A DNA stretch of 63,430 bases, the filler included, from Dicyema japonicum (lineage: Eukaryota > Animalia > Dicyemida): the NCBI GenBank assembly GCA_011109175.1. It is 4 parts of 4 records of this genome, joined end to end, with 100 filler letters (N's around TTAATTAATTAA, not from the genome) between each part and the next. Parts side by side here need not be neighbours in the genome. Positions count along the whole stretch, not along the records: positions 1 to 23,883 come from RDEW01000079.1; 3 more parts are not named here. One strand, given 5' to 3'. Positions within the stretch are counted from its first letter, which is position 1, and each line of letters begins with the position of its first letter. Position numbers and translations under genes: made by a program. The notes beneath the pieces were generated by a model. It saw nothing but the letters and a program-made list of their open reading frames with translations, was not told where the DNA came from and made no database searches. Shown here in pieces: positions 10,790 through 23,389 of the stretch.

Positions 10790-11486
10790 TTATGTATTTC
10801 TAAATTGACGATGAAAAGCGTCAAAAATCTGGCTAGCCTTTGTGGTTCCCAACCCCTGACACAAACTGAGTTGTTCCACACTAGCCTGAGCAATGCCCTC
10901 CAAGTCGGTAAAGAAATTAAGTAGAGTTTTGGCATCAGTCTTATTGACTCCCTTAATCGCAGTCAACACATCGATCACCAAGCAAATACAACAGAAGATT
11001 ACTGCGGTGTGTACGTCTTCTGCTTTTTTTGGCATAATTATCCCCGGAGGCTTTTTTTCAAATATTTTATAAGTCTAGACATAGCGGGCAGCCTCCTCCG
11101 AACTAAAGTATGGCGATTATTCTGACCTCCAGCAAACGATCATGCTAAAATCGGCCAATATCGATATTTGAGCCAACTCCGACAAGGCCGAGTCCGGATC
11201 GTCCTATCACGTGTTGCCCAATGAGAACCGAGTCGATTTTGACTAGCAAGACTTTAATTTTGAATCCTCTCTCGACAGAGTTGATTCTCTGATGGATATA
11301 TCGGCGTCTTCCCATGTGAAAGCGGAGACTTAAATATAAAATGCAAGTGCTGGGGGGAATCACGTAGTCTGCGGAGATTGCCTGATACTCCCAAGGCACG
11401 GCTGTGATGTAGTTCAGCAGGGGATTGCCACATCTTCAATATCAGACAGCTTCAATTACTTGGTTGTGATTCACGTGGATACTCAT
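10790..11486 (-). pseudogene. ERCC1: ERCC1 copy A (disabled)
   Basis: GNPLLNYI, VPWEY, LYLSLRFH, VNKTDAKTLL and CQGLGTTKA match ERCC1. Has an in-frame TAG at 11075-11077 (CAG in copy B) and an extra base near 11432. Confidence 0.8.
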
Positions 11487-11613
11487 TTATTATTTGTATT
11501 TAATCCACAACGACGTTCATAGCTAATTTAAATTAATTAATAATCCTGATCATATGCGTTGAAGCCCCAACCGTCGTGTTTTGGAAAGGAATTGAAACTG
11601 GATATCTCCTGCT

Positions 11614-12140
11614 ATGATCGTCATGTGGTTCACCTTCTCGTGGAGACGATTGGATGCTGATTCTCCATCAGCAACAAACAGAACCAACTTTTCCCCCTTG
11701 CCAACCAACCTGTCAACGGTTTGGTTGGTAGTGGCTACGGGACGAGCGTCAAGCTTACGTTCCCTGATTCTATTGTTGATTCGGTGTGGATATGTGGAAC
11801 AAAACCCTGGACCTGAGCCTATTAGAACACTAACCATCCTTCAATTGAACATCAACGGGATTTCTAAGAAATGCAATGACCTACGCTATTTTCTACACAC
11901 GAACTCTATTGATATAGCTCTTATTAAAGAGACCAAACTTACTCCAAAATCCAAAACCCCCCGTTTCAAGGGATATTCCACCATTCGTCATGACCGCCTC
12001 TCTGGAAAGCCTGGCGGTGGTCTTATTACTCTAATTCACGGGGCCATTCCTTTTGCAGATTCAACTGCCACATTAAATCTCTCTTAACTAATGATCGATT
12101 TACCGAAATTTCATCTATTCAGATTAACATTAACAAGATA
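11614..12140 (+). mobile_element. Non-LTR retrotransposon 5' fragment: 2A-like peptide plus APE endonuclease
   Basis: LILLLIRCGYVEQNPGP followed by ILQLNINGI, DIALIKETKL and DR...GGGLITLI (APE motifs). Confidence 0.8.
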
Positions 12141-12496
12141 TGTGAATTAATTTTGAAATTAACTAAAAACTAATAGCTAAGGCGTTTGCCCTTAACTATG
12201 GCGATAGAGATCCTCTCGATGAGTCTAGAGAACTCCTCGATTTAAATCGGCAAAGAAATATTCCAGTTTCCACTTTTTTTGAAAAGATCTGCATTCTGTA
12301 TCAACTTTGCGTTTTGTTGAAAAAGACATCAGCACAAGACAAGAAAACAATTAGAATAATATAAATCCAAAAAAACAATTAATTATTTTTAATTAATAAT
12401 TTTTTATTTTTATTTATATTCTAGAATCAAGATTCTTGTATTTTATTTGGTGTTAAATAATGATTCAAGATTTTAAATACACTTTTAAACTTATTT

Positions 12497-13884: not shown

Positions 13885-14437
13885 TCTGCGGAGTTCAAAC
13901 ACCAATGCCGCTGCGGAGTCCAGACGACGAGGACGGATATCATTCTCTTTCCTGTCGTAACGGGTTGGGACGCTCCTCACGGCACACTGAAATAAATGAG
14001 ATCATCCGCCGGTCTCTCCGAACTGCTGGATTCCATTCTCAGCTGGAACCCGTTGGCTTATTCGTCGAGGACGGCAGGAGACCAGACGGGATGACTACTT
14101 TTCCCTTTCACAGGGGTAAGTGTCTGGTATGGGACGCTACATGTGTAAACTCCTACTCAGAGCCCAACATGAAGCTGTCCTGAAAGAACCCGGGGCTCCA
14201 AGCAACCAGGCTGAGAAGAGGAAACTCGAAAAATATTCGGGATCTGGAGAAGCCAACGTTTTCATCCCCGTTGGAGTCGAGACGTCTGGGGTCCTTGGCA
14301 CCTCTGCAATCAACCTATTTCGAAGAATAGGTTCATTAATGGAGAGGAACACAAGAGACCCAAAGGAGTTCTCTAGACTCATCGAGAGGATCTCTATCGC
14401 CATAGTTAAGGGCAACGCCTTAGCTATTAGTTTTTAG
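13885..14437 (+). mobile_element. CRE-like non-LTR retrotransposon 3' end (restriction-like endonuclease)
   Basis: H.LSC, RH..IN, RPDG, WDATC, EKRKLEKY, PVGVETSG and RISIAIVKGNA. Confidence 0.8.
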
Positions 14438-14459
14438 TTAATTTCAAAATTAATTCACA

Positions 14460-14990
14460 TATCTTGTTAATGTTAATTTGAATAGATGAAATTTCGGTAA
14501 ATCGATCATTAGTTAAGAGAGATTCAATGTTGGCAGTTGAATCTGCAAAAGGAATGGCCTCGTGAATGAGAGTAATAAGACCCCGCCAGGCTTTCCAGAG
14601 AGGCGGTCATGACGAATGGTGGAATATCCTTGAAACGGGGGGTTTTAAATTTTGGAGTAAGTTTGGTCTCTTGAATAAGAGCTATATCAATAGAGTTCGT
14701 GTGTAGACAATAGCGTAGGTCATTGCATTTCTTAGAAATCCCGTTGATGTTCAATTGAAGGATGGTTAGTGTTCTAATAGGCTCAGGTTCAGGTTTTGTT
14801 CCACATCTCCACACCGAATCAACAATAGAATCAGGGAACGTAAGCTTGACGCTCGTCCCGTAGCCACTACCAACCAAACCGTTGACAGGTTGGTTGGCAA
14901 GGGGGAAAAGTTGGTTCTGTTTGTTGCTGATGGAGAATCAGCATCCAATCGTCTTCACGAGAAGGTGAACCACATGACGATCATAGCAGG
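14460..14990 (-). mobile_element. Second copy of the 2A-like plus APE fragment
   Basis: LLLIRCGDVEQN followed by a 1-nt deletion, then ILQLNINGI and IQETKL. Confidence 0.8.
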
Positions 14991-15111
14991 AGATATCCAG
15001 TTCAATTCCTTTCCAAAACACGACGGTTGGGGGCTTCAACGCATATGATCAGGATTATTAATTAATTTAAATTAGCTATGAACGTCGTTGTGGGTTAAAT
15101 ACAAATAATAA

Positions 15112-15787
15112 ATGAGTATCCACGTGAATCACAACCAAGTAATTGAAGCTGTCTGATATTGAAGAGTGGCAATCCCCTGCTGAACTACATCACAGCCGTG
15201 CCTTGGGAGTATCAGGCAATCTCCGCAGACTACGTGATTCCCCCCAGCACTTGCATTTTATATTTAAGTCTCCGCTTTCACATGGGAAGACGCCGATATA
15301 TCCATCAGAGAATCAACTCTGTCGAGAGAGGATTCAAAATTAAAGTCTTGCTAGTCAAAATCGACTCGGTTCTCATTGGGCAACACGTGATAGGACGATC
15401 CGGACTCGGCCTTGTCGGAGTTGGCTCAAATATCGATATTGGCCGATTTTAGCATGATCGTTTGCTGGAGGTCAGAATAATCGTCCTACTTTAGTTCGGA
15501 GGAGGCTGCCCGCTATGTCCAGACTTATAAAATATTTGAAAAAAAGCCTCCGGGGATAATTATGCCAAAAAAGCAGAAGACGTACACACCGCAGTAATCT
15601 TCTGTTGTATTTGCTTGGTGATCGATGTGTTGACTGCGATTAAGGGAGTCAATAAGACTGATGCCAAAACTCTACTTAATTTCTTTACCGACTTGGAGGG
15701 CATTGCTCAGGCTAGTGTGGAACAACTCAGTTTGTGTCAGGGGTTGGGAACCACAAAGGCTAGCCAGATTTTTGACGCTTTTCATCG
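15112..15787 (+). CDS. ERCC1: DNA excision repair protein ERCC1, copy B (3' end cut at an N)
   Basis: ATG at 15112. Introns 15139-15164, 15369-15393, 15471-15494 and candidate 15594-15617. Spliced protein follows ERCC1 (SGNPLLNYI...CWSSEEAARYVQTYK...VNKTDA...CQGLG). One A is missing from a homopolymer near 15570. Confidence 0.85.
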
Positions 15788-17576: not shown

Positions 17577-20500
17577 ATGGATCCCACAGGTACTGAAGTC
17601 ATCCCCACTCTAAGAAAATATTAAATGGACAGTTGACCAGAAAAGTACGTATATGAACGATTCAGAATTCAAAAGTCGACTAAAACAACTACAAGCCTTC
17701 ATCGACAACATTTCCTTAAATAATTTTGATGCTTCTCCAGCTCAGAAAAGACAAATTTTTTGTGGTTGGAATTTTTAAAAGCTGACCAGCAGGAAACGTC
17801 CAATTTGAATTTTTTCAAAGAGCAGTAAACTCCATTTTTGAAGACGAGCTCGACATTCGTGGATTACGTAACTGTTTCCTAAAAATATTCACAACACCCG
17901 GACACAAACTTGACTGGACGGAGGTTCCTGTAACAGAAATTTTGACAGATTTTTGGATCATTTGTCCAGGAAATCGGATTGCCCTCAACAAATTCAACAC
18001 TGGCGACACTGGACAGTCAAATCACAAAGCAATCTCCGGTAACATGATCTGGTCAATCTTTCAAGATCTGAGCGCAGGAGACTTTGTCTGCTGTGTGAAA
18101 TACTTTGAACACCTGGAATGCTACAGCACTGCCTCGATTCTGGGAATGGTGTGCATTTGGAACAAAAAAGTAGTTTTTCTAATAATTTGCAGTTCAGAAG
18201 AATAAACATGCTCGTGACAAATGTCGTCAGTGTTGGTATAATCGAATAGAGCAAATACTGGACGGTGGGTTTGGGCTACGCTAAAGTCGGGAAGCGGGTT
18301 GTTCTCATCAACGAAAACGAACTGATAATCTGGGACTACAGAACTTCGGGGAGTCAGAAAGTACCACACGTGGTATATTTTAGAACTACAGCATCCTCAA
18401 TTGCACCAACAAACGAATCACAGCCGCGGTAGTCGACAACTTGGACGACGGGTCTGACGTAATCATTTTTGGCGACAGCGCGGGAAACATTGGAATTCTT
18501 CACTACGAGCAGTCCATGTTGTCTCGACAGGCAGAAATATCAAAAAGTCCTCGATTTTGTTGTTCAATGTCTGCGATTCGGTCAAGTAGTGCAAAGTCGA
18601 ATCCTTTTAGAAATTACCCTCAGTTCCACAGAGCTTCCGTCGAATCAGTTCTTGATTTATTTGCACGTGCATTAGATATTATACGATTCTACGCTAAAAT
18701 TGTTAATCTCGTCGTCAGCCACTAATCGTGGTCAAATTGTTATCACAAAAATCTCAGAAAAGCACGTGCTTAAGTACGTGTCTTGCCGTTAATGTATAGA
18801 CAACAATTCGTCATCATTAAAGAGACGAAATGTTTGGAAGTGACTCAAGGGATGGTCATCGTAGGAGGAAAGGACAAAATAATACACGTGTGGACATCCT
18901 TGAACTTCAATACGAAACCGAGTTGTTTAAAAAATACATTTCGAGACAAACTGTACGGACATAGGACTTGCATCATCGATTTGAAGTCATGTGGAAAGCT
19001 GCTGGCCAGTTTGTCGACGAACGGAGTCATTTTTGTGTGGAGTCTGTCTTCCTTTGTCCTTATACAAGTACTTTTGGCGACTCACTCCGCAAGCAAGTCA
19101 AGGCAAACTCTCCCACGTTTCTAAACTGTCTGTGTTTGGCCAAAAATGAGCTTGTCGCAGGTAATGTTGTTGTCTCATGGCTTAGCATCGACGAAGCTCT
19201 TGTTTTGGAAGGTCAACAAGCTTTCTATGGACCGCCACAAAATAGTTCAATCGCACGAGTTCCCGGTCATTAACGTATTTAATTTTTATACAAAAGTAGA
19301 TGTTTCTTGAAGGAATGACTAGCCAAATGATATCCTACGACCAACATTCCAACATAAAAGTCGTTTTTTGCTTATTTAACAGATTTGGGACTTGATGAAC
19401 ATGGAAAAGACCAGCGAATTCGAGGCCAGCAGTTCCGGGCTTATCACCGCCTGTGAACTCGAGCCTGGCTCATTCACGGCCACGTTTGGATATCAGAATG
19501 GTACCCCTGTCAGTCAAATTCAAACAGGCGCCTTGGAAGTCTGGGATTTGGCATTTAAACAAAAGTTCAAATCATTTGTGCCCGTTGAAGGTTCCTCAAA
19601 CAAGATTTTGGCTTTAAAGACGTACATAGTGAGGAACAAGCTCTCGATTGTGACTCTGAATGACAATAAGGCTCTTGACGTTTATGACGGATCAGTACTT
19701 AAGTGACTAATTTGTAGAAGAGGACAAAACGACTGAAATAATTCTGCTCAATTCTTTCCAATTACCCCCAAGTGAAGGAAAGCCTACTGTGGTCACTTTT
19801 GTCAAAAAAATGGTAATCATCGGGGACAGTCAGGGGAATGTCGAGATATATAATTTGAACACATTGGAGAGAACTGCTCAAAAGTAAACTGATTGAACTC
19901 AATTTTAAGCAAAATCAGCAAGAAAGACGCGGCCATCACAAAAATGGTCATCATCGGAACCAACAACTGGTAAGTACAGCCATTTTACCACTTCTAGTAG
20001 ACCACGTAGCATAATCAAGGAAAGTAAGGTAACTTAATTACTAATGTAAGAAATTAAATAAGAGAATGGATTCAGTAAAGCATAATCCAAGTTCAAGATA
20101 TTTGTAAAAATACAACTCAGATAAAAAATTCATTCTGAATGTGGTCTCCGCCCTATCCGACGGACAATCGTGGTCTGGGAAGTGAAGGTTTCCTGTTTTC
20201 CGCCATTCCCAGGCGAACAAAATAGTGGAACTGAGCCTTCTCATGAAGAAGACATCCGTCGTGTCCAGTCTGGCCTACTCAAGCCAATACTGTGCCTTTT
20301 GGCTGGAACGACGGTTGTCCCTGACCTGTGAATAACAAGATGGTTATATAATCAGAATAACCACGGACTTGAGAGACTCGGTGAATGAAAAGGATGTCGA
20401 CTGGCAATCATGGCAGGGTCACTCAGGAAGGATCAATTCGATCAGAATTACCAAAGACACGTTTCTGACCTGCAGTGAAGACACCTCCATAAGGTTTTGG

Positions 20501-21020
20501 ATCTGTCAGACTGGCAGGGTTTGGGACATGAAAACCAACAGCTTCTCCAATTACTGTCGAACAGGCCGAGTTTTATCAGGATTAATAAACGGAAAAAGTT
20601 TGTGTTTGAAGACATACCCAACAAGGTTTGAGTTTTTTTGAATTACGAGGACGCCGAAACACCAGAAGAATCCAATTATAGCTCAGAACACGGCCGTAGT
20701 GGAGTATTCGGTTAAATTCACTTTTTAGGAAAACCTCGAATTTAAAAAACGACTTTGTCCTGCCGAACATTCTGAAACATAATTACTTTTCCAATATAGG
20801 AAATACTGCCGTGGGCCATACGTTAAGACCAAGTAAAAAACTCGAATTGGAGGACTATATTTGGCTCGATCAAAGTCCATAAGGTTTTTTAAGGTCAATA
20901 TTGGGCAGATCGAATCGGTTCCTTCTGCAAGAACAGTGGCAAAAAAAATTTCAAAAGGGTCCCGGACATCTGATGGCCACAACCAATGATACACCTAACA
21001 AGTTAAAAATACTTTATTAA
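17577..21020 (+). CDS. WD40-repeat protein, WDR64/WDR49-like, many tiny introns (3' end approximate)
   Basis: Spliced N-terminus ...CFLKIFTTPGHKLDWTEIFGSF resembles WDR64. WD motifs include GGKDKIIHVW, LYGHRTCI, IFVWS, LEVWD and WQGHSGRINSI...TCSEDTSIR. Introns are 21-30 nt. Confidence 0.7.
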
Positions 21021-21210
21021 AATTAATCATTTTTTAATTAAATTTAATGCTTTTCATGAATTTTTCGATTTATTGTTGATATAATTTTTGATTACGTTAT
21101 TTTAATTGTTGTTAATGAAATATTTGGAAAAACAATGAATTAAAATTAAAATAAAAAAGAATATAAAAAATAAAATTATCAATATAAAAATAAAGTTTAA
21201 AGACAAATAT

Positions 21211-21620
21211 AGTATGTAGTGTAGTTGTTACTTATATTTTTAGTGAATGATCAGGACAAGGTCCGATTCCGTGCTGAATTAGAGTTCGTGCAGTGCCTTT
21301 CAAGTCCTAAATATTTAAATTGTACAAAATCTATTTCCAACCCGTAGTAATTGCCCAAAAAGGATATTTTCAAGACACTTGTTTTATAAACTATTTATCT
21401 TACCTACAATACTGGAAACAACCCAAATACTCATATTTTATAAAGTATGTTACGTAATAATCCCAGATATCCCACGTCACTATATTTCCTCGATTTACTT
21501 CAAGATCCCCAATTTCGAGAAAGAATAGCACGATGCGAGGTAGCTCAGAACATAGAAGACCAACTGATTCTCCACTGGCAGAACTACCAGCGGAAACGAC
21601 AAGGGAAGCTGACTCAGTGA
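21211..21620 (+). CDS. MED31: Mediator subunit 31 (SOH1), 109 aa
   Basis: Exons 21211, 21244-21321, 21348-21444 and 21467-21620 give MNDQDKVRFRAELEFVQCLSSPKYLNLIAQKGYFQDTCFINYLSYLQYWKQPKYSYFIKYPTSLYFLDLLQDPQFRERIARCEVAQNIEDQLILHWQNYQRKR..., the MED31 signature. Absent from the ORF track. Confidence 0.93.
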
Positions 21621-23389
21621 AAGGAGAAGAGCTCTTTGAGGGCCTCTCCACCTCCTGGGACGTCGTGAATGTCCTCGGCCATTTATTCAAATGCAAACAA
21701 AAATCAGTCCGCGAACAACTGGCTTTGAAACTCCAGGAATTTCCCCAAAGTGAGGAGTATTTGGCACAGCTGTTGAGCATGCACGTGACTAACTACGACG
21801 GAGGGTTCCTCGAGGAATATCTCCTTGCTCGTTGCCGGTCTTCGGTTCGCTTTGCAGTCACTTGCTCGCTCATGTTGAGGGCTCTTTCTCTTGGATATGA
21901 CGGGACATGTCGTCCTTTGGAGAGATATCTATGGAAGGCAAAGAAGAGTCACAGGAGGACATATTCTGATAGAGATAGAGGAGGGTTTGACTCGGGCTGT
22001 CGATGTCCTGTCAGCAAGACACAGTGGGTGGACGCATTTGCTCGAGGGGAGGCCGAATATGGGCGAGGGACATCTCACTGTCGTTGTCAAATCAACTTGA
22101 TTCGTCCACAAGTCGCATTTCTCTCTCAGTTGACTGCCCTTGGGTGTGAGCGGTGTCTTCCACACGAAAGACTAAATGTGCTCGTCAACCAACTCAAATG
22201 TCTTAATTCGAGTCTGCCTGCCCCTGTTTGGCTTCCCTTTTCCACAGAACACATAATTCTTAATATTTGTGAGAACGAGACAGTCATTCTCAATTCCAAG
22301 CCAAATGCCCCCTTCCTCGTATATGTGGAGGCACTACAGCGTCAGGCTGAGGCTACGGTCTCGACGTACTCAAAGTCCGAGTCCAATCTCCAGTCCAACA
22401 CTGTCTACTGTCAGCGTGTGTCTGCTGCTTCTATTCGACACCGATTACAACATTCTGTGACTCCTCTGATTGTGTCTTCCTCCAAGGATTCTACTGCGAT
22501 GGTCCCCGAGTGTTGGAATGTGAAGAAGGCGAGAATAAGGGCGACATCCTTGTTCGGAGATATGCCTAATTGGAGTTTATGGCCAGTCATCGTCAAACAG
22601 GGGGATGATTTGAGACAGGAAGTGCTGATATCCCAGGTTGAGTATTTGGTGATATCTGAGGTGATTGGACTACTCCAGGAGAGTTGGGAGGTCGAGAATG
22701 TGAGGTTGTGGGTTCGTCCTGTTCGTGTGTATGTGACTGGATCACTTCGGGGACTGATTGAATATATCCCCAACACTGCATCACTCCATCAAATCAAAAA
22801 GCGAGGATTTCCCCGACTTCATCAGTATTTTGTGGAACAGTTCGGGTTGGAGACGTCTGAGAAATATTTATGTGCGAGGGAGAACTTTGTGAGGAGCTGT
22901 GCGGGCTATTGTGTGGTGTGTTATCTCCTGCAAGTCAAGGACAGACACAACGGGAACATTCTTCTGGACGATGAGGGCCATATGTTGCATATTGACTTTG
23001 CTTTTGTAATGTCTTCTTCTCCTGGAGGAATTTGGGGTTTGAGGTGTCGCCCTTCAAGTTGACTGACGAGTTTGTGGAGGTGATGGGAGGGCTCGAGTCG
23101 GATATGTTCAGATTCTTCAAGAGTCTCATTTTCCAGGGACTTGTGGGAGCCAGGAAGCACGTGGAGAGGATTATTACATTGATGGAGATAATGCAAGTGG
23201 GGAATCCTACTCTCCCCTGTTTCAAGAACAGTACATGTTCTATTCAGTCCGGTCAGACAGAGGTTTCATGTCTCGTTGAAGGAAGACCAGTTGGAGCAGT
23301 TCACTGAGGAGATGGTTAATTCATCCTTGCGCTCGATCACTACTCGTTTGTATGACAGTTATCAGTACTTTTCTAATGGAATTTTTTAA
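21618..23389 (+). CDS. PI4KB: Phosphatidylinositol 4-kinase beta (start uncertain: spliced A|TG or ATG 21533)
   Basis: Helical region YLAQLLSM. Kinase motifs VIVKQGDDLRQE, CAGYCVVCYLLQVKDRHNGNILLD and HIDF. C-terminus SITTRLYDSYQYFSNGIF*. In-frame 24-nt intron at 22637-22660 and two single-base indels near 23030 and 23250. Confidence 0.9.

Follow-up and report, generated by a model that had tools for sequence, protein, structure and literature searches.

A Probable Bicistronic MED31–PI4KB Transcription Unit with Overlapping Reading Frames in Dicyema japonicum

Dicyemids are tiny parasites living in octopus kidneys, and in the genome of one of them, Dicyema japonicum, two unrelated housekeeping genes, MED31 and PI4KB, lie packed so tightly that one mRNA appears to be common to both. 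Our sequence analysis of a 63,430-nt stretch of DNA from this genome (hereafter the window) suggests that, on balance, both proteins are probably read from a single bicistronic mRNA, in which the two frames would overlap by 88 nt and PI4KB would start at ATG 21533, to which ribosomes would gain access through leaky scanning or by reinitiating after an upstream ORF (uORF). An earlier note on this locus had favored a common first exon alternatively spliced to either protein, listing the 88-nt overlap among its alternatives. The sequence features that it described for the locus are all present in the window, but the overlap proved the better fit, the ATG and the open frame behind it being conserved.

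Recurrence of the MED31–PI4KB Layout

In the window, the MED31 stop codon adjoins the helical domain of PI4KB without a 3′ UTR between them. The same layout recurs in a second locus of the assembly (G000:C68:624167-626362; L003, L005), which is ~70% identical and has neighbors different from those of the window, and in a dicyemid contig within the Octopus sinensis assembly (GCA_006345805.1, VCDQ01002408.1; hereafter L057). The latter is a 1-Mb contig with DNA 91% identical to the window, represented in RefSeq by XP_029655099.1, and is evidently dicyemid, not octopus. In both of these further loci, MED31 comprises 109 codons, begins at AATATAGT..TTTTAG/TGAATGA, and ends in CAG TGA directly before the PI4KB domain. 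A search of the genome for MED31 and PI4KB found no loci beyond those in the window and on G000:C68. Conservation is assessed below over these three loci, which come from two deep lineages: between the window and the second locus, 36 of 78 synonymous codons are identical against 33 expected by chance, a value near synonymous saturation, and the two can therefore be regarded as nearly independent.

The earlier note had also considered that an assembly artifact might conceal a fusion or an ordinary ATG, and had pointed to an indel at 21590–21630 as its possible source. Two real indel errors do exist further down PI4KB in the window, where a base missing near 23023 and an extra base near 23249 frameshift the kinase domain; the public contigs are intact in frame, those of X1 and X3 contradicting both indels and that of X4 contradicting the one at 23023. 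At 21590–21630, however, no indel was found in contigs of the DNA run X1, nor in those of the RNA runs X3 and X4 (other samples, ~94% identical to the window; contigs were used), and the junction is the same in the two other loci. An artifact is accordingly so improbable that we rejected it and take the abutment as real. The layout and the hexamer CAGTGA are present in all three loci. Two small introns that would remove the MED31 stop were rejected as well: excision from GT 21540 to AG 21617 would still leave a stop in frame, and this intron has no counterpart in the second locus, whereas one from GT 21617 would measure 15 nt and be out of frame.

Several observations concern the assembly more broadly. 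A number of E2 genes also occur in diverged pairs, as MED31–PI4KB do; either two dicyemid species may be mixed in the assembly, or these may be duplicates of old date. An expanded tandem E2 (UBE2J-like) subfamily lies on contigs C14, C35, C101, and C323 (seen in L037, L041, L045, L048, L049, L050, and L052), with some copies apparently broken. Within the window, 10809–12186 and 14414–15787 form an inverted duplication, 96–100% identical, containing an ERCC1 gene (PF03834) and a LINE-like endonuclease fragment; it is either real or an assembly artifact.

MED31 and Its Split Start Codon

All features of the locus lie on the plus strand. The AT-rich intergenic stretch at 21000–21210 (GC 0.24 for 21001–21500) is presumed to hold a single promoter and the 5′ UTR, and similar AT-rich stretches precede other genes of the same genome. 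No upstream ATG is common to the window, L057, and the second locus. The earlier note had held that MED31 can only start at a split A/TG, and our analysis supports this: joining A21211, the last base of exon 1, to 21244 after removal of a 32-nt GT..AG intron (intron 1, phase 1; 21212–21243) gives the 109-aa MED31, and the sequence around this A is kept in all three loci. The acceptor at 21243 is among the best scoring on a matrix of 23 introns (5.1, 8.1, and 9.2 in the three loci), and the RNA contigs start within 3 nt of it, at 21244 (X3) and 21241 (X4), as expected if short 5′ tips, spliced and unspliced, were pruned, the upstream side lying outside the contigs. Other genes of the genome also carry introns adjoining the start codon. 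Because of the lack of a shared upstream ATG, the strong acceptor, the contig starts, and the start-adjacent introns elsewhere, a start codon assembled by removal of intron 1 is likely. In the window, A21218 or A21223 could take the place of A21211, the nearer donors at 21219 and 21224 also giving A/TG; in the second locus, the only donor preceded by an A is the homologous one (34 nt). At the 5′ ends of many genes (L015–L050), the AT-rich stretch is followed by a short TG-rich element 10–30 nt before the ATG; a similar element sits inside MED31 intron 1, so that transcription might start very near A21211.

The coding exons (21244–21321, 21348–21444, and 21467–21620) encode 109 aa and end in TGA at 21618–21620. 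Spliced models were searched exon by exon; each exon matches Pfam PF05669 above the cut-off, and together they cover profile positions 2–94, which by profile makes MED31 an ordinary, strongly shortened member of the PF05669 (MED31/SOH1) family. The introns at 21322–21347 and 21445–21466 are absent from RNA contigs X3 and X4. In Planococcus, introns 2 and 3 of MED31 occupy the same positions, and the first intron, which is also in phase 1, lies before the domain, displaced upstream by 12 nt. Human MED31 exons 2 and 3, at 78 and 97 nt, have the same sizes as here. Exon 2 (21244–21321) is identical between the window and L057, exons 3 and 4 carrying ~12 synonymous changes, and extra constraint near the start is one possible reading of this sequence identity.

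A Compact, Nearly Intron-Free PI4KB

The PI4KB ORF (21533–23389; ~610 aa) is interrupted by one intron at 22637–22660. It matches the PIK accessory (PF21245) and kinase (PF00454) profiles with E-values of 1.7e-10 and 4.9e-28, respectively, and its best homologs are PI4KB proteins; by profile it is an ordinary PI4KB/Pik1 family member, again strongly shortened. The PI4KB of the second locus likewise carries apparent frameshifts. In XP_029655099.1, the evidently dicyemid protein with an octopus label, a fragment of a Tc5 transposase has been wrongly joined to the C-terminus, and this Octopus-labelled entry was the only hit of our protein searches for dicyemid transcript contigs.

The single intron is 24 nt long and lies at a non-ancestral position, compared with 11–12 introns in the coding sequences of the spiralians Lottia, Lingula, Owenia, and Bugula. 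All animal PI4KB proteins examined have a variable N-terminal tail of 65–280 aa before the WLLRLF motif, and the 28-aa extension that ATG 21533 adds would be a remnant of this tail. A retrocopy origin of PI4KB is possible. Speculatively, a nearly intron-free PI4KB, retroposed or cDNA-converted, could have landed at the MED31 3′ end and lost its own promoter; such an arrival would explain the missing promoter. PI4KB has one non-ancestral intron, while MED31 keeps its introns.

Spliced RNA Contigs across Both Genes

The earlier proposal that one promoter serves both ORFs is supported by RNA, in that the spliced contigs of X3 (21244–22323) and X4 (21241–22311), being contigs and not molecules, run unbroken across the MED31 stop into PI4KB. 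Their mean depth is like that of PI4KB-only contigs (13.9 vs. 14.2 and 85 vs. 72), which is a weak measure. The 60 nt after the MED31 stop have a GC content of 0.60, against 0.13–0.47 after 19 E2 stops, and neither a poly(A)-like hexamer nor an AT-rich 3′ UTR was found near the MED31 stop. Because MED31 lacks a 3′ UTR, its message must run into PI4KB. None of the 19 E2 genes is followed by an abutting long ORF, and the abutment may be specific to this locus. UPF1 is present in the genome, and an mRNA carrying both genes, with an exon junction 1 kb downstream of the MED31 stop, might be targeted for decay. Elsewhere in the assembly, an LSM-family match at G000:C39:24018-24134 (minus strand) lies against a 2265-aa open frame, which could be another small gene adjoining a large ORF or an LSm-domain protein.

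The Conserved ATG at 21533

The overlap of the two frames spans 88 nt (21533–21620). In the window, L057, and the second locus alike, ATG 21533 (nt 242 of the spliced mRNA) is in the PI4KB frame and is followed by no stop before the domain. The earlier note had named 21779 as the next in-frame ATG, which holds downstream of the MED31 stop only, the conserved 21533 lying upstream in the same frame. Before nt 242, the spliced mRNAs of all three loci contain no ATG other than the MED31 start and one at +4, after which ~235 nt are free of ATGs. The ATG at +4 opens an out-of-frame ORF of 11 codons (21247–21282), which has the same length in the three loci and which the Asn-Asp codons of MED31 largely impose. 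In synonymous shuffles, the combination of ATG 21533, its open frame, and no intervening ATG arises in 6–11% of trials per copy, and any such ATG in 9–16%; over the two near-independent copies, the joint chance is ~0.01–0.02, a post hoc value, the choice of statistics having been made with the data already in view.

Between the window and L057, 2 changes fall in the 88-nt overlap and 6 in the 65 nt ahead of it, a weak contrast, as exon 2 has none; after 21620, most changes, the first two included, are synonymous in the PI4KB frame, which every model predicts. The RefSeq model XP_029655099.1 starts at ATG 21533, which counts for little, being ORF-based. The base at −3 of this ATG varies (A, T, and C in the three loci), and no protein-level constraint was seen in the 28-aa extension.

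The bicistronic arrangement would operate as follows. One promoter would yield one spliced mRNA carrying MED31 and PI4KB, with the MED31 AUG (A/UG) assembled by removal of intron 1. Some scanning ribosomes would pass this AUG, or would read the 11-codon ORF at +4 and then reinitiate; meeting no AUG for ~235 nt, they would start in the −1 frame at AUG 21533, from where 88 nt remain until the MED31 stop codon ends. The predicted product is a PI4KB of ~610 aa, with a loosely constrained tail of 28 aa replacing the 65–280 aa of other animals. Several points count against this arrangement: ribosomes leaking past the first AUG would be captured by the one at +4 unless they then reinitiate, the base at −3 of ATG 21533 and the 28-aa extension show no conservation, and decay of the mRNA could be triggered as described above. 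The −1 frame is open upstream beyond what is needed (P 0.03–0.08), which the arrangement leaves unexplained.

Alternative Explanations

The arrangement favored in the earlier note, in which the donor after A21211 is spliced to 21244 for MED31 or to 21618 for PI4KB and a common first exon gives the A of both starts, now seems unlikely. An exon with one coding base would be spliced 32 or 406 nt downstream, its split A/UG starting a Mediator subunit or a lipid kinase, and the kinase would borrow the UG of MED31's own UGA stop in an animal with introns otherwise of ~24 nt, a construction that we find doubtful. Its attractions are evident: A21211 joined at 21618 does read MKGEELFEG, exactly in the PI4KB frame; CAG/TG is kept in all loci; PI4KB homology begins 1–4 codons after the AG/TG; in D. 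japonicum, nothing but the AG is left of the 3′ splice site signal (PMC13644364); unc-17/cha-1 offers a precedent (PMC3875643); and contig building would discard a short 5′ tip. The coincidence at 21616–21619, proposed as distal acceptor (or as the GUG start considered below), is nevertheless weaker than it looks, because this AG/TG is a CAG codon before TGA, any such pair yields AG/TG, and CAG accounts for about half of the Gln codons of these MED31 genes; it is in frame with GTG 21617 by construction. The spliced X3 and X4 contigs contain no 21211–21618 joint, as far as contigs, which drop short tips and rare joints, can tell. Every intron in a small sample of 23 (20 from E2 genes by spliced alignment, which allowed introns to 450 nt and slightly penalized those >40, and 3 confirmed by RNA) measures 21–31 nt (median 24) and uses the nearest AG that lies ≥21 nt from the donor; dicyemid introns are known to be short, and the 21–32 nt found here agrees (PMC6543705, PMC13644364). 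The junction AG scores −3.2, −5.4, and −4.0 in the three loci. The MED31 acceptor reaches 5.1, 8.1, and 9.2, and the median for exonic AGs is −4.1; none of the 23 true acceptors, scored leave-one-out, falls as low as the junction AG (their minimum is −2.6). The junction AG is the 26th, 29th, and 33rd AG, with score ranks of 12/26, 15/29, and 22/33 among the AGs passed. The WD40-gene intron ending in GCTGACCAG that had been cited as a parallel exists (17765–17789), but the branch-like CTGAC occurs in 0 of 22 introns checked and reads CTGAG in X3, X4, and L057 and ATGAC in the second locus. Lottia, Lingula, Owenia, and Bugula lack an ancestral intron before the WLLRLF motif; loop-out pairing around MED31 is not better than in shuffles, with no conserved inverted repeat; and ATAGT..TTTTAGTG shows no genome-wide enrichment, its 81 matches comparing with 140 when the pattern was reversed as a control. 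An alternative 3′ splice site at 406 nt is thus unsupported, given its exon-like AG, introns of 21–31 nt, and contigs without the joint, and it would leave ATG 21533 unexplained. Were it true, it would imply long-range acceptor choice by a spliceosome that otherwise appears to measure ~24 nt.

Four further explanations were considered. The foremost, though improbable, has PI4KB start from ATG 21533 on a separate mRNA driven by an internal promoter within MED31 (AT-rich exon 3 or intron 3), the long RNA being just a MED31 message with a long 3′ UTR. It accounts equally well for the conserved ATG and open frame, and 21380–21470 is AT-rich, but the lack of ATGs further upstream is left unexplained, and depth shows no increase where contigs cover PI4KB alone, which is weak evidence. 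Initiation at GUG 21617, through a GUGA stop/start overlap with termination–reinitiation or non-AUG initiation, appears quite unlikely. In its favor, the GTG at the domain edge is conserved and a single synonymous change (CAA) would give a classic ATGA overlap; against it, an in-frame AUG lies 84 nt upstream, the last 120 nt lack a TGGGA (calicivirus TURBS-like) motif, and the chance of keeping CAG is about one half. Both ORFs follow AG/TG and the contigs begin at the first acceptor, as they would if spliced-leader trans-splicing resolved an operon and the leader, with A as its last base, completed both AUGs, and flatworm leaders do supply an AUG (PMC9851317). We consider such an operon very improbable, as ~20 E2, proteasome, and window genes with readable starts carry their ATG in the genome, in some cases immediately followed by an intron, which led us to reject a general leader-donated start; the contigs also lack a leader-like loose 5′ end, our literature search found no report for dicyemids, and the junction AG is exon-like. 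A −1 ribosomal frameshift from MED31 into the PI4KB frame has slightly less still to commend it: in each locus the −1 frame opens further upstream than needed, at spliced nt 68 in the window and L057 (P ~0.03–0.04) and at nt 176 in the second locus (P ~0.08), and a slippery heptamer comes after the last stop, but these heptamers sit at non-homologous places and the product would bear 45–85 unconserved residues.

Comparison with Known Gene Arrangements

By analogy, the bicistronic arrangement would resemble human MOCS2 more than the shared split start codon proposed earlier. MOCS2 contains two ORFs in different frames with a 77-nt overlap, the second being read by leaky scanning (PMC9607355). 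Here too, a small first ORF precedes a larger second one in another frame, with an overlap of 88 nt; the in-frame AUG of the second ORF overlaps the first and is conserved with its open frame (ATG 21533, three loci). Between the two starts, ~235 nt are free of AUGs in all loci, but an out-of-frame AUG stands at +4. The differences are that MOCS2 encodes two subunits of one enzyme whereas MED31 and PI4KB are unrelated, that the first start codon would here be made by splicing, and that leaky scanning is putative here. Green algal bicistronic genes offer a second parallel: they show start-codon depletion before the second ORF, and some of their loci have an overlapping stop and start (PMC11291117); they are widespread there, in contrast to the 0/19 E2 genes with an abutting long ORF here. 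In the cholinergic locus unc-17/cha-1 of C. elegans (PMC3875643), the exon in common is untranslated and the nested gene terminates at a 3′ end of its own, whereas MED31 has no 3′ UTR, and acceptor context and a junction in contigs are lacking. Neither a distal AG in acceptor context nor a 3′ end of the nested gene before the distal acceptor is found in the dicyemid locus, the latter because the MED31 stop codon itself follows the AG.

Implications for Genome Compaction

Within the limited library searched, no report was found of bicistronic or overlapping genes in dicyemids or of a MED31–PI4KB pair. For annotation, the locus carries a warning, in that the RefSeq model records only PI4KB there and the Octopus sinensis assembly contains dicyemid genes. 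The pair has persisted across ~30% nucleotide divergence while its neighbors changed. If the bicistronic arrangement is correct, the locus would place two core genes under one promoter and exemplify genome compaction reaching the level of translation in a reduced animal.
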